DNA from: Hemiscyllium ocellatum
Lineage: Eukaryota
Assembly (NCBI RefSeq): GCF_020745735.1
Contig: NW_026869259.1
Location: 62,001 to 126,000, forward strand
Length of the DNA stretch: 64,000 nt
Direction of reading: 5' to 3'
The notes under the pieces were generated by a model that did not search any database, was not told the DNA's origin, and worked only from the letters and a program-made list of their open reading frames with translations. The stretch's first letter is position 1; each line of letters begins with the position of its first letter. This document shows, piece by piece, positions 2,698-64,000 of this stretch. The position numbers and the translations under genes were made by a program.

Positions 2698-2945
2698 AGC
2701 AGAGTTAAAGCTGGAGGAGGTGGGAGCTCGGTGTCTCACTGTGCTGCTGCTGCTGCTGCTGCTGCTGCTGAAGTCAGTGAGATCAGAGACTGGGACAGGG
2801 AGCCAGAGCTCACATCAAACTCTGTCTGTGTCTGTCACACTGAGACTGGCAGGAGGTTACTTACTGATTTCACTCCATGCTGCAGGAATGGGACCACAGG
2901 CTGCAAATGGACAGAGCTCCTCCACACGGTGAGTAAAACTGACTG
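2698..2945 (+). other. Conserved non-TE element in the J-C intron: (CTG)9 repeat, heptamer, ATG at 2888, G|GTGAGT donor at 2929
   Basis: Near-identical inverted copy at 56279-56525; exon status is inferred. Confidence 0.5.
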
Positions 2946-3110: not shown

Positions 3111-3145
3111 TCAGTCTGAGCTTGGTTCCTTTACCGAAAGTAAGC
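3111..3145 (-). CDS. IGKJ: Ig kappa-type J segment (unrearranged), LTFGKGTKLRL(S)
   Basis: Minus strand reads g ctt act ttc ggt aaa gga acc aag ctc aga ctg a|GTAAGT. It has the FGxGT motif, a phase-1 splice donor (3105-3110) and a 23-RSS directly upstream. Confidence 0.96.
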
Positions 3146-3184
3146 CACAGTGAGAGCTCCCAGTGCAGAGGCTGTACAAAATCC
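3146..3184 (+). other. 23-bp-spacer recombination signal sequence of J
   Basis: Heptamer CACAGTG 3146-3152, 23-nt spacer 3153-3175, nonamer ACAAAATCC 3176-3184 (1 mismatch to ACAAAAACC). Confidence 0.95.
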
Positions 3185-3286: not shown

Positions 3287-3447
3287 NNNNNNNNNNNNNN
3301 NNNNNNNNNNNNNNNNNNNNNNNNNNNNNNNNNNNNNNNNNNNNNNNNNNNNNNNNNNNNNNNNNNNNNNNNNNNNNNNNNNNNNNNNNNNNNNNNNNNN
3401 NNNNNNNNNNNNNNNNNNNNNNNNNNNNNNNNNNNNNNNNNNNNNNN
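3287..3447. other. Assembly gap (161 N) between V and J of the split gene
   Basis: Run of N flanked by CT-rich sequence. Confidence 1.
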
Positions 3448-3791: not shown

Positions 3792-3819
3792 GGTTTTTGT
3801 ACGGCTCTGTATCACTGTG
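3792..3819 (-). other. 12-bp-spacer recombination signal sequence of V
   Basis: Minus strand: CACAGTG (3819-3813), atacagagccgt (12 nt), ACAAAAACC (3800-3792). Perfect consensus. V-12/J-23 is the kappa arrangement. Confidence 0.97.
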
Positions 3820-4121
3820 CCAAGGCCAGCTCTCACTTTGCTGACAGTAATAATCAGCGACATGCTCATTCTGAACGTTGCTGATTGTCAGGGTGAAATG
3901 TGTGCTAGACACTTGTGTCCCTGTGAATCTGTTGGAGACTCCTGTGAATCGAGTTGCAGCATTGTAGATCAGGAGAGAGGGTTTCTGTCCTTCCCGTTGC
4001 TGGAACCATTCAACATCACCACTGGCACTCTGACTGGATTTACAGGTGATGGTTGCGGTCTGGCCCAGTCCCACTGACAGCACCGGGGGAGACTGAGTCA
4101 TGATGATGTCCCCACTGATAC
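3820..4121 (-). CDS. IGKV: Ig kappa-type V exon (unrearranged), [27 protein letters not shown]...WFQQ...[11 protein letters not shown]
   Basis: Open frame within ORF 3742..4239 with canonical Cys23, Trp35 and YYC; polypyrimidine-cag acceptor at 4122-4124; ends exactly at the RSS heptamer. Framework matches the nurse shark NS4 (kappa) type as I recall it. Confidence 0.96.
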
Positions 4122-4307
4122 CTGAGGGGTCAGAGAGAAACACAGTGAAGTCAGAACTGTCACAGAAAGAGCCGGTCAAATGAGAGATTGTTGGAGACAA
4201 TGAGCATTCCTCTGGTTTCAGCATTTTCCCTTCAATCACAAGTCAGTGGAATTGGAGTGAAATGGAGATCAGCTAAAGATTCAAGGTGGAAGGAGAGAGA
4301 TTTGTAC

Positions 4308-4356
4308 CTGCGATACAGAATGCCAGGGGCCAGATCAGCTGGATGTGTGAAATCAT
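4308..4356 (-). CDS. IGKV: Leader exon of the split kappa gene, MISHIQLIWPLAFCIA(G)
   Basis: ATG at 4356-4354, 49 nt, donor CAG|GTACAA; a 186-nt intron splices in frame to the V exon. Confidence 0.93.
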
Positions 4357-55360: not shown

Positions 55361-55459
55361 AAGAGGAAGTGTGTGGGGCTGACGTGGCTCTCTCTGCCTG
55401 ATCCCATTTACATACTGAGGAACACCCAGTCAGACTCTCACAGGCTGCAGCTTTATAAA
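55361..55459 (+). promoter_or_regulatory. Promoter of the joined kappa gene: AAGAGGAAGTG (55361-55371), TGACGTGG (55380-55387), variant octamer ATTTACAT (55406-55413), TTTATAAA (55452-55459)
   Basis: Inverted paralog of 4412-4508. Motifs read directly from the sequence; factor assignments are inference. Confidence 0.8.
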
Positions 55460-55519: not shown

Positions 55520-55568
55520 ATGATTTCACACATCCAACTGATCTGGCCCCTGGCATTCTGTGTCGCAG
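55520..55568 (+). CDS. IGKV: Leader exon of the joined kappa gene, MISHIQLIWPLAFCVA(G)
   Basis: ATG 55520, 49 nt, donor CAG|GTACAA, 184-nt intron; near-identical to the left leader. Confidence 0.93.
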
Positions 55569-55752
55569 GTACAAATCTCTCTCCTTCCATCTTGAATCTT
55601 TAGCTGCTCTCCATTTCACTCCAATTCCACTGACTTGTGATTGAAGGGAAAATGCTGAAACCAGAGGAATGCTCAGAGTCTCCAACAATCTCTCATTTGA
55701 CCGGCTCTTTCTGTGACACGTGATTTGACTGTGTTTCTCTCTGACCCCTCAG

Positions 55753-56082
55753 GTATCAGTGGGGACATCATCATGACTCAGTCTCCCCCGGTGCTGTCAG
55801 TGGAACTGAGCCAGACCGCAACCATCACCTGTAAGGCCAGTCAAAGCGTTGGCAGCTACCTTGCTTGGTACCAGCAGCGAGAAGGTCAGAAACCCTCTCT
55901 CCTGATCTATGATGCAACAAAACGATTCACAGGAGTCTCCGATCGATTCACCGGCAGTGGATCAGGGACCAGTTTCACCCTGAAAATCAGCAACGTTCAG
56001 AATGAGGATGTCGCTGACTATTACTGTCAGAAGCTTACAGCTGGTCTTGACACGTTCGGTCCAGGAACCAAGCTCAGACTGA
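55753..56082 (+). CDS. IGKV: Germline-joined VJ kappa exon, DIIMTQ...[21 protein letters not shown](S)
   Basis: A single 330-nt open exon runs from the cag acceptor (55751-52) through V, CDR3 and FGPGT to a GTAAGT donor (56083). No RSS between V and J; leader intron and promoter are retained, so it is not a retrocopy. Confidence 0.95.
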
Positions 56083-56278
56083 GTAAGTAAACCCCATTCC
56101 TCTCTTATTGAACCTGTCAATACTGAAACACAATTTCTAAAACACAAATACTGAATTGTTGAAGGTGTCAGTGAGAAGCTGCAGTGAATGAAGTAGTTGA
56201 CTGAGGAGCACTGTGTCTGACAGGTTGTCCAGCTGTATTTTTATAGTTCCATTCCCCCTTAAAAAGCAAGATATAAGT

Positions 56279-56525
56279 CAGTCAGTTTTACTCACTGTGT
56301 GGAGGAGCTCTGTCCATTTACAGCCTGTGGTCCCATTCCTGCAGCATGGAGTGAAATCAGTGAGTAGCCTCCTGCCAGTCTCAGTGTGACGGACACGGGC
56401 AGAGTTTGATGTGAGCTCTGGCTCCCTGTCCCAGTCTCTGATCTCACTGACCTCAGCAGCAGCAGCAGCAGCAGCAGCACAGTGAGACACCGAGCTCCCA
56501 CCTCCCCCAGCTTTAACTCTGCTCA
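56279..56525 (-). other. Paralog of the J-C intron element: (CTG)8, ATG at 56336, GTGAGT donor at 56295-56290
   Basis: Reverse complement aligns to 2698-2945 with few substitutions. Confidence 0.5.
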
Positions 56526-56989: not shown

Positions 56990-58580
56990 CCTTTGGGAAT
57001 ATAATTTGTCATCTACCCAAAACATTCACATGCTTCCTCAATTAGTCACATTATCTATGTCCCTCATGATTTTATAAATTTCTCAGCCTCTGATACTGCA
57101 GGGAAAATTGCACCAGTTTATTCATCCTCTCCCTATCGTTCAAACCCTCCAAGTCCTAGCAAAATCTTTGTAAATCTTTTTCTGCACCTTTTAAAAGTTT
57201 AACAATATCCTTCCTATCACACAATGATCAGAATTGTTCACATTATTCCCAAAATGGCCTCACCAATTTCCTGTATATCTGCAACATGATGTCCCAACTC
57301 CTATACTCAATACAGTGACCACTAAAGGCAAACGTTCCGAACACCTTCTTCATCGCCCTGACTCCCTGTGATCCAGTTTTAAGGAATGATGCAGCTTACA
57401 CTTACCTTCACCTTCATCCCTCACCCCTCACCCCTCACCCCTCACCCCTCGGTCTCTTTGTTTAGCAACACTCCACAGGGCCCTACCATTAACTGTATAA
57501 CTCCTGCCCTGGTTTGCCTTTCCTTTCCAAAATGCAACATCTCACATTTATCTAAACTGAATTCCATTTCCCACTCCTCTGTCCATTGCCCCATATGATC
57601 AAGGTCCCAAAATAACCTGAGATAATCTTCACTATCTACTGTCCCACCAATTTTGATGTCATTTACAAACGTGTGTTAGCTTGTATATATTCACAGTGAA
57701 ATCATTTATTTAAATGACCAAAAGCAGCGGACCCAGCACCACTCCTTGCGGCACACAGCTATTCACAGCTCTCCGATCTGAAAATCAACCCTTTACCACC
57801 ACTCCCTCTCTCCTATCTTCAAGCTAATGATTTTACCCAAATGGCTGGCTCCCCCTCAATCCCATGTGGTCTAACCTTACTAACTAGTCTACCATGTGGA
57901 ACCTTTTCAAATACTTTACTGAAGTCCATACAGACAGTGTCTACTGTTCTGCTTTCATCAATCTTCTTTGTCAACTCTTCAATTAAATCAGGGAGACACA
58001 ATTTGCCACGCACAAAACCACATTGATTATCCAAATGGATGGAAATCTTGTCCCTCAGAATCCACTCCAACATCTTACCCAGCACTGACATCATGCTCAC
58101 TGGTCTATAGTTCCCTAGCTTTTCCTTACAGCCATTCTGAAATAATGGTACAACATTAGCCAACCTCTCTGGTTCTCCAACATCTTACCTGTAGCTGTCG
58201 ATGATAAACATATCTCAGCAAGGGGCCCAGCAATCTCTTCCCTCGTTTCCCACAATGTTCTGGGATACACCTGATCAGGTCCTAGGGATTTACCTACCTT
58301 CATATGTTTTAAGACCTTTCACATCTCCTCATTTGTATTGTGGACTTTTTGAAAGCATCACTATTTTTTCCAAATTCCGTCGCATTCATGTCCTTCTCCA
58401 CAATAAATACTGACCTGAAATATTTGTTGAGGATCTCACCCATCTCCTGTGTCTTACCAAAATACAGCACTCACAATTATCTGAATTAAATTCCATCTGC
58501 CATTCCTCAGACCACTGGCCCAGTTGGTCAAGATCCCATTGTACTCTGAGACAGCCTTCTTCACTGGCCACGATGCCACC
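56990..58580 (-). mobile_element. CR1 RT and 3' fragments
   Basis: ORF 57819..58163: NVVPLFQNG..KLGNYRPVS...DFSKVFEKVPHGRL. Confidence 0.85.
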
Positions 58581-63239: not shown

Positions 63240-63900
63240 GAGGGATGGACAGCACAGAATCCGACCCTTTGGTCCAATTTGTCCATGCTGATCAGATATC
63301 TGAAATTAATCCAGTCCCATTTGCCAGCATGTGGCCCATATCCCTCTAAACTCTTCCTATTTACATACCCATGCCTTTTAAATGTTGTAATTGTCCCAGC
63401 CTTCACCACCTCCTCTGGCAGCTCATTCCATACATTTAACACCCTCTGAATGAAAACGTTGTCCCTTAGGTCCATTCTAAATCTTTCCCGTCACCTTCAG
63501 CCTATGCCCTCCAGTTCTGGACTCCCCAACTCTGGAGAAAAGATCTTCTCTATTCACCCTATCTATGCCGCTCATGATTTTATAAACCTCTATACGGTCA
63601 CCCATCAACCTGCAATGATCCAGGGAAAACAGCCTCAGCCTATTCAGCCTCTCCCTTTTGCACAAACCCTCCGACCTTGGCAACATCATTGTAAATCTTT
63701 TCTGAACCATTTTAAGTTCCAAAACATTTTTCCTGTAGCAGGGAGACCAGAATTGCACACAGTATTCCAAAAGTGCCCTAACCAATGTCCTGTACAGCCA
63801 CAACAGCTCCCAACTCCAATAATCAATGCACTGCCTAATAAAGGAAAGCAAAGCAAATGACTTTGTCACTACCCTACCTACCTGCAACTTCATCTTCAAG
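63240..63900 (-). mobile_element. CR1/HER1 3' fragment
   Basis: ORF 63477..63962: LYRTLVRALLEYCVQFWSP...GDRIEVYKIM. Confidence 0.88.
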
Positions 63901-64000
63901 GAACTATTCTTCATTTTTTCGATGAACTGAGAGTCTTTCAGTTGTGAAAGATGCCATTCCACGGCACTATTGGATGAAGAGCAGGCAGTTCCCCCTGGTG

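Follow-up and report, generated by a model that had tools for sequence, protein, structure and literature searches.

A probable germline-joined kappa light chain gene in a hemiscylliid shark with a CDR3 read in a shifted frame of the V end

Introduction

Germline-joined immunoglobulin genes in sharks are the main evidence for the action of RAG in germ cells and for receptors that do not rearrange. Most such joins are expected to be out of frame and to die.

In the NS4 light chain genes of the nurse shark, about 10% of roughly 50 genes are germline-joined (Lee, Fitch, Flajnik, Hsu, J Exp Med 2000; PMC2193156). The joined members are R4, R7, R18, RE18, R6, and R19, and at least five independent joins were inferred among the NS4 genes (PMC2193156). 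Their joints show small flank losses and lack an N region, and close split relatives are present (PMC2193156). Two of the joined genes are pseudogenes, and R19 is in frame only with one CDR3 nucleotide removed (PMC2193156). The germline origin of the joined genes was established by Southern blots of erythrocyte DNA from several animals; RAG-type recombination in germ cells was proposed as the source of the joins, and expression was detected in neonates only (PMC2193156).

In this study, we analyzed a gene at positions 55520-56082 (+ strand) of a 64-kb stretch of DNA, hereafter called the window, from a putative cluster-type IgL locus of a hemiscylliid shark. This gene is very probably a germline-joined kappa (type III/NS4-like) L-VJ gene with two germline events behind its CDR3. 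Similar to the nurse shark NS4 genes, it consists of an octamer, a leader, a leader intron of ~185 nt, a VJ exon, and a J donor, with V and J fused without RSS. The small flank losses at the joint, the lack of an N region, and the presence of close split relatives in the genome are also shared. In contrast to R19, the 1-nt anomaly of the window gene lies at the start of the V-encoded CDR3, and it opens the frame rather than closing it. Furthermore, whereas the nurse shark genes were examined by Southern blots, the germline state of the window gene is read from one assembly.

In-frame joined genes are also annotated in Chiloscyllium punctatum (XP_072429389/392, XP_072429398, XP_072429437, and XP_072429442). 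Similar to the window gene, they have a 9-residue CDR3 and the same or a similar J (FGPG, FGSG, or FGKG followed by TKLRLS). However, their CDR3s (QQYSSNPRT, MQHYSWSLT, MQEYSYPYT, and QQHYSWSIT) are canonical and lie in the native V frame, unlike that of the window gene. In particular, the H-Y-S-W-S V end is in frame in two of these genes and out of register in the window gene. Since the joints differ, the joins in C. punctatum and in the window are independent. Collectively, the window gene is a further case of the known class of germline-joined kappa genes, and what is unusual about it is a V-encoded CDR3 indel that offsets the frame of the joint. In the literature searched, which covered a part of the journals, no published case of such a frame-compensating CDR3 indel was found.

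Results

Organization of the joined gene

The leader, the splice sites, and the open reading frame of the joined gene are intact from the leader through the J donor, and RSSs are absent. By direct reading, the promoter contains an octamer variant, ATTTACAT, at 55406-55413 and a TATA-like element, TTTATAAA, at 55452-55459 (+ strand, as are all features of this gene below). The leader exon (55520-55568), located by tblastn, starts with the ATG at 55520 and encodes M-I-S-H-I-Q-L-I-W-P-L-A-F-C-V-A-G followed by a split codon, with 100% identity over 17 aa to shark kappa protein queries. It is followed by a leader intron of 184 nt (55569-55752) with GT..AG ends, and 55568 is spliced to 55753 in RNA contigs of related genes. 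The fused V-J exon (55753-56082) is open from FR1 through FGPGTKLRL, with Cys23, Trp35, Cys88, and FGPG intact.

Based on a Pfam search, the V-J exon is a V-set domain (E=6.9e-18), and the invariant residues of a kappa-type framework are present in the alignment. The closest protein matches are kappa light chains of C. punctatum, Hemiscyllium ocellatum, and the nurse shark, and the V domain shows 77-85% identity to the in-frame joined kappa genes of C. punctatum, with a range of 79-85% for the fused V-J exon. Moreover, an AlphaFold2 model of the joined V domain, built on 14 relatives, predicts a confident fold, with a mean pLDDT of 93.5 and a value of 82 over the CDR3 block.

V is contiguous with J in this gene, and no heptamer, spacer, or nonamer was found between them. 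The split genes align with the joined gene as far as the heptamer, and there the joined gene continues directly into J. The J-derived part, CACG TTC GGT CCA GGA ACC AAG CTC AGA CTG A, occupies 56051-56082 and is followed by the J splice donor GTAAGT (56083-56088). Comparisons were also made with Logan contigs of the runs X1, X3, and X4, which are short unitigs, mostly of paralogues and expressed kappa, from runs whose species are coded and may differ from that of the window. An X3 contig continues from the position of the J donor into CGTGAGAACTCTCAGCCCAAG, the start of a C exon. Within the 64-kb window, tblastn found no C exon and two V genes only, the joined gene and a split gene; the C exon of the joined gene would lie past the end of the window.

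The octamer variant ATTTACAT, together with the upstream GCTGACGTGG, also occurs in the split C. punctatum genes L001-L004 and L006. As these split genes carry it, the variant is the norm of the family, neither a sign of decay nor a speciality of the joined gene, and its use as a mark of decay in the joined gene was rejected. The region 55380-55413, with GCTGACGTGG and ATTTACAT upstream of the TATA box, is common to the joined gene and most of the split C. punctatum genes; the split gene of the window has GACTGATGTG and the consensus ATTTGCAT instead. The promoter contrast therefore follows the subfamily of V or the species, not the joined or split state.

In the leader intron, the joined gene alone has lost 2 nt and gained about four substitutions in a stretch of 15 nt (55717-55730). 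Across two species, the seven other genes hardly differ at these positions, and a CTGAC branch-point-like motif is altered in the joined gene. The leader intron is otherwise 93-96% conserved.

The V-encoded CDR3 is read in a shifted register

The joined gene reads TGT(56025) CAG AAG CTT ACA GCT GGT CTT GAC ACG TTC GGT. Between the Cys codon TGT (56025-56027) and the Phe of FGPG (56055-56057) lies a CDR3 of nine codons, Q-K-L-T-A-G-L-D-T (56028-56054). Its V-derived part comprises 23 nt (56028-56050) and contains TAC AGC TGG TCT TGA (56036-56050) in the canonical V register. In the split V of the window, the end is TGT CAG CAA AGT GAG AGC TGG CCT TGG; next come CACAGTG, 12 nt of spacer, and ACAAAAACC. 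An earlier reading of the window, made from the sequence only, had quoted both the split V end and the joined CDR3, and the quotations are exact. Its 12-mers from the two genes do match at 10/12 positions, and their distance from TGTCAG is 8 nt in the joined gene against 9 nt in the split V.

To place this difference among relatives, we compared the joined gene with seven split V genes, one from the window and six unrearranged genes from C. punctatum (L001-L006, from an older assembly). A further contig, L007 (which carries P0174), was discarded as a V/J comparator, as it holds a C exon only, without V or J. From the Cys codon to the CAC of the heptamer, the distance is exactly 24 nt in 7/7 split V genes; the joined gene has 23 nt before CAC, a count that for 56028-56038 comes from the genome assembly alone. 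MAFFT placed one 1-nt gap in the joined gene right after TGTCAG, both in the pairwise alignment with the split V and in an alignment of eight genes. When the joined CDR3 was compared with the seven V ends, 9-15 of 23 positions were identical with anchoring at the 3' side and 4-9 of 23 with anchoring at the Cys codon, and a register difference as large arose in 1/20,000 shuffles of the segment. In addition, the 15-nt block TACAGCTGGTCTTGA matches the V ends of relatives up to the final base before the heptamer. In C. punctatum L003 and L004, the V end ...CCTTGA stands directly before the heptamer (CACAGTG; CACAATG in L003). Because these two V genes end in CCTTGA followed by CAC, the TCTTGA at 56045-56050 is an untrimmed V end whose last native-register codon is TGA.

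No other part of the gene varies as much as CDR3, and chance can produce short matches. The shifted-frame likeness might thus be due to chance, with QKLTAGLDT a native or junction-generated CDR3, or the joined sequence might be a somatic rearrangement caught in the assembly; we regard this as extremely improbable. A chance match is hard to reconcile with the shuffle test and with a block that follows the V ends to the last base before the heptamer. Further against this reading, N-region-like bases are absent, the consensus of an assembly would not be set by one clone of lymphocytes, and C. punctatum likewise has annotated joined kappa genes. The difference between 24 and 23 nt, the identity anchored at the 3' side, the shuffle test, and the CCTTGA V ends together argue that the CDR3 resemblance is shifted-register homology and not chance.

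In other words, this coding segment is homologous to that of its relatives in another reading frame, with an indel at the boundary, and in the joined gene the canonical V end, Y-S-W-S-stop, yields (L)T-A-G-L-D. The earlier claim that the V part of the CDR3 is a canonical kappa V end in another frame is thereby upheld by the 24-nt distance in 7/7 relatives and by the shuffle test. With a V part of 24 nt, the distance from Cys to Phe would be 28 nt, out of frame and with a TGA at the joint. The actual V part of 23 nt makes this distance 27 nt, or nine codons. The frame arithmetic of the sequence-only reading, in which a canonical 24-nt V end plus this J remnant is out of frame with a TGA at the joint, is therefore correct. 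That reading had also allowed for unrearranged V genes that natively end in QKLTAGL in this frame. No such shifted register was found among the seven V ends (DNA) or about 20 more (protein), mostly from another species, and none of the split V genes had a 23-nt end.

Position of the lost base

The lost base had been taken to be the C of a CAA codon. This is not supported, as the 1-nt gap, with the relatives as reference, fits about equally well at any position of 56028-56038, and the relatives suggest CAG AAG CAT/GGT TAC. Two X1 contigs read TGT CAG AAG CAT TAC AGC TGG TCT T and TGT CAG AAG GGT TAC AGC TGG TCT T (QKHYSW and QKGYSW). Their one extra base is an A or G and follows 56034, whereas a C would have been expected after 56030 under the CAA proposal; they diverge from the window after 56048. 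X1 is from a related species or from the same species as the window; it has a DNA-like depth profile, and one of its contigs matches the J-C intron of the window at all of its 176 nt. Similarly, a contig of X3, which has another organism code, reads C-Q-R-G-Y-S-W-T-Y-T-F-G in frame. TAC AGC TGG is thus in the canonical register among the relatives, namely X1, X3 (CQRGYSWTYTFG), and the C. punctatum proteins (MQHYSWSLT and QQHYSWSIT), and from these sequences the canonical V end of the CDR3 is Q-(Q/K)-x-Y-S-W-S.

Because the closest relatives keep Lys (AAG), the lost base may have belonged to the third CDR3 codon and not have been the C of CAA. The frame argument is unaffected by the identity of the lost base. 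We also considered whether GCTTAC (56033-56038) is a stray copy of the 5' end of the neighbouring J (GCTTAC TTTCGG). Such a copy is unnecessary, as A-Y and H-Y codons are normal at this position in the V ends of relatives.

An error of assembly or consensus would give the same deficit of one base, with a true sequence of 24 nt and a joined gene that is out of frame and dead, and a multi-copy family invites consensus mistakes. We nevertheless consider such an error quite unlikely. There is no long homopolymer at the deficit, where local runs are <=2 nt, and, given the usual accuracy of a long-read consensus, a single-base slip is improbable in just the ~27-nt stretch where it would restore the frame. 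Moreover, the X1 coverage at 56034 is 283.5, of which only 131.8 carries the insertion; this is compatible with contigs of the window form, though they end nearby.

The V-J joint and the order of events

In the germline J segments of the window and of L001-L005, the 7 nt before TTCGG are GGACACG, GTACACG, GTTCACG, GCATACG, GCTTCCG, and GCTTACT, and the joined gene has TGACACG at these positions. A complete V end and a J (GGACACG or GTACACG) shortened by 1-3 nt account for every base of the joint, with no N region, and the total loss of V and J at the joint is 3 nt. Microhomology is present, with GA common to both ends, or GACAC if the CAC of the heptamer is counted.

Two events would account for this structure. 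One would have removed the DNA between V and J with both RSSs, through RAG-type recombination in germ cells or through microhomology-mediated deletion, keeping the V end untrimmed (...TCTTGA), taking 1-3 nt from J, and adding no N nucleotides. The other would have been the loss of one base near the start of the V-encoded CDR3, within its first ~11 nt. The two events combined would produce the open 9-codon CDR3; had the base not been lost, V and J would be joined +1 out of frame, with a TGA at the joint.

The sequence-only reading had the join come first. This part of the proposal was not borne out, since the loss of 1 nt in a split V followed by an in-frame join gives an identical sequence. 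Both orders consist of the same two events in one lineage, with the same 1-in-3 frame class. We infer the two orders to be about equally likely, as none of the features found distinguishes them. A join followed by the deletion, that is, a true rescue, has close to an even chance of being correct. This order includes a dead interval that the open reading frame had to survive. No sequence combining this joint (TCTTGACACGTTCGG) with a V part of 24 nt was found in the sample of V ends, which is small and mostly from another species, or in the contigs of the runs.

In the reverse order, a split V would have lost one base of its CDR3 end and later joined in frame to a trimmed J, so that the gene was never a pseudogene; its probability lies somewhat below an even chance. 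Such a split V had to tolerate a shifted CDR3 end. Because the junctions of a rearranging gene vary, a base loss at this place would have been harmless. This order yields exactly the observed sequence, and it spares the gene a dead interval in which it had to escape damage; the open reading frame, the promoter, and the splice sites are all intact. Against it, the shifted register is present in 0/7 split V genes (DNA) and 0/about 20 V ends (protein), in a sample mostly from another species. In addition, a Gly-to-Ser change at a nearly invariant glycine of the joined gene, described below, is slightly easier to place in a phase of relaxed constraint.

Expression and constraint

To look for the product of the joined gene, we searched the Logan contigs of X1, X3, and X4 and the raw-read single-cell run X24, and none contained a contig bridging the junction. 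In X4 the depth falls to 0 at 56047, and beyond 56048 the X1 contigs no longer follow the window. The X4 contigs match the window at 56034, 56045, and 56049-56051; an indel near 56030 would fall below the 10% threshold for listing in this run. For the 171-nt junction stretch, no indexed run contained more than 4/13 of the sampled words; this maximum was reached in many organisms, with conserved FR3 or J words and not those of the junction. For a 1.1-kb stretch, the best indexed run contains 0.46 of the words. The product was not among the annotated Hemiscyllium ocellatum kappa proteins retrieved, and an exact look-up showed that the open reading frame is not on record.

In FR1, the joined gene reads V-E-L-S-Q at 55797-55805, versus V-G-L-G-Q in relatives. 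The Gly-to-Ser change in the L-G-Q turn is unique to the joined gene, and the 13 other aligned sequences have Gly. At this nearly invariant glycine, the change fits relaxed constraint as judged by alignment, and together with the changes in the leader intron it hints at some unconstrained evolution.

The sequence-only reading had suggested RNA-seq as a place to find the junction and had proposed that retention of the rescued gene would hint at selection. The former search gave no bridging contig in X3 or X4, and nothing matched from X24. The latter suggestion is not supported by these results, with no bridging transcript or contig and with the unique Gly-to-Ser change. The fullest version of the proposal is rather unlikely. 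In that version, a +1 joint with a TGA was reopened later by a 1-base deletion 15-20 nt upstream, and the reopened gene was kept; its expression, in embryos or neonates for instance, would give a light chain of fixed specificity with its L3 loop in an alternative frame of the V end.

If the gene is transcribed, the L3 loop of its light chain would be fixed and non-canonical, without proline or aromatic residues. If the rescue is true and the gene is expressed, the rescue of a RAG-made joint through a germline frameshift would have created CDR3 sequence de novo. More generally, if a nearby indel can reopen a dead joint, out-of-frame joined genes would be raw material for new fixed receptors, with binding loops whose sequences were never encoded by any V frame. 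The locus is a clean and testable candidate for this, with one base and one joint, and it proves neither the path taken nor the use of the product.

The split cluster and other features of the window

The split kappa V gene lies on the - strand (3792-4356), with the leader ATG at 4356, the V exon at 4121-3820, the heptamer at 3819-3813, a 12-nt spacer, and the nonamer at 3800-3792. Its J is on the same strand (3111-3184), with the nonamer at 3184-3176, a 23-nt spacer, the heptamer at 3152-3146, the J coding part at 3145-3111, and the donor GT at 3110-3109. On the J side, the sequence reads GGATTTTGT, the 23-nt spacer, and CACTGTG, followed by J. A run of 161 N is located at 3287-3447, inside the V-J intervening sequence of this cluster. 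In the split V, His (CAT) at 3862-3864 (-) stands where all 14 kappa V domains of the alignment have an invariant Asp. Based on this alignment, the Asp-to-His change may impair the function of the split V despite its intact open reading frame and RSS.

Over their first ~450 nt, the J-C introns of the two clusters share about 87% identity, and the joined gene has an insertion of ~20 nt immediately behind its donor. A (CAG)n microsatellite occupies the same J-C intron position in both clusters, at 56451-56480 and at 2745-2778 (-), with 8 versus 9-10 repeats. In the J-C intron of the joined cluster, open reading frame fragments resembling reverse transcriptase (LINE-like) lie at 57819-58163 (-) and 63477-63962 (-).

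Finally, the annotated H. ocellatum protein XP_060686024 (P0035) reads CMQHSSWP-LRSVKEP... and continues through an odd linker into C. Judging from its sequence, XP_060686024 looks like a gene model drawn over an out-of-frame joined VJ elsewhere in the genome.
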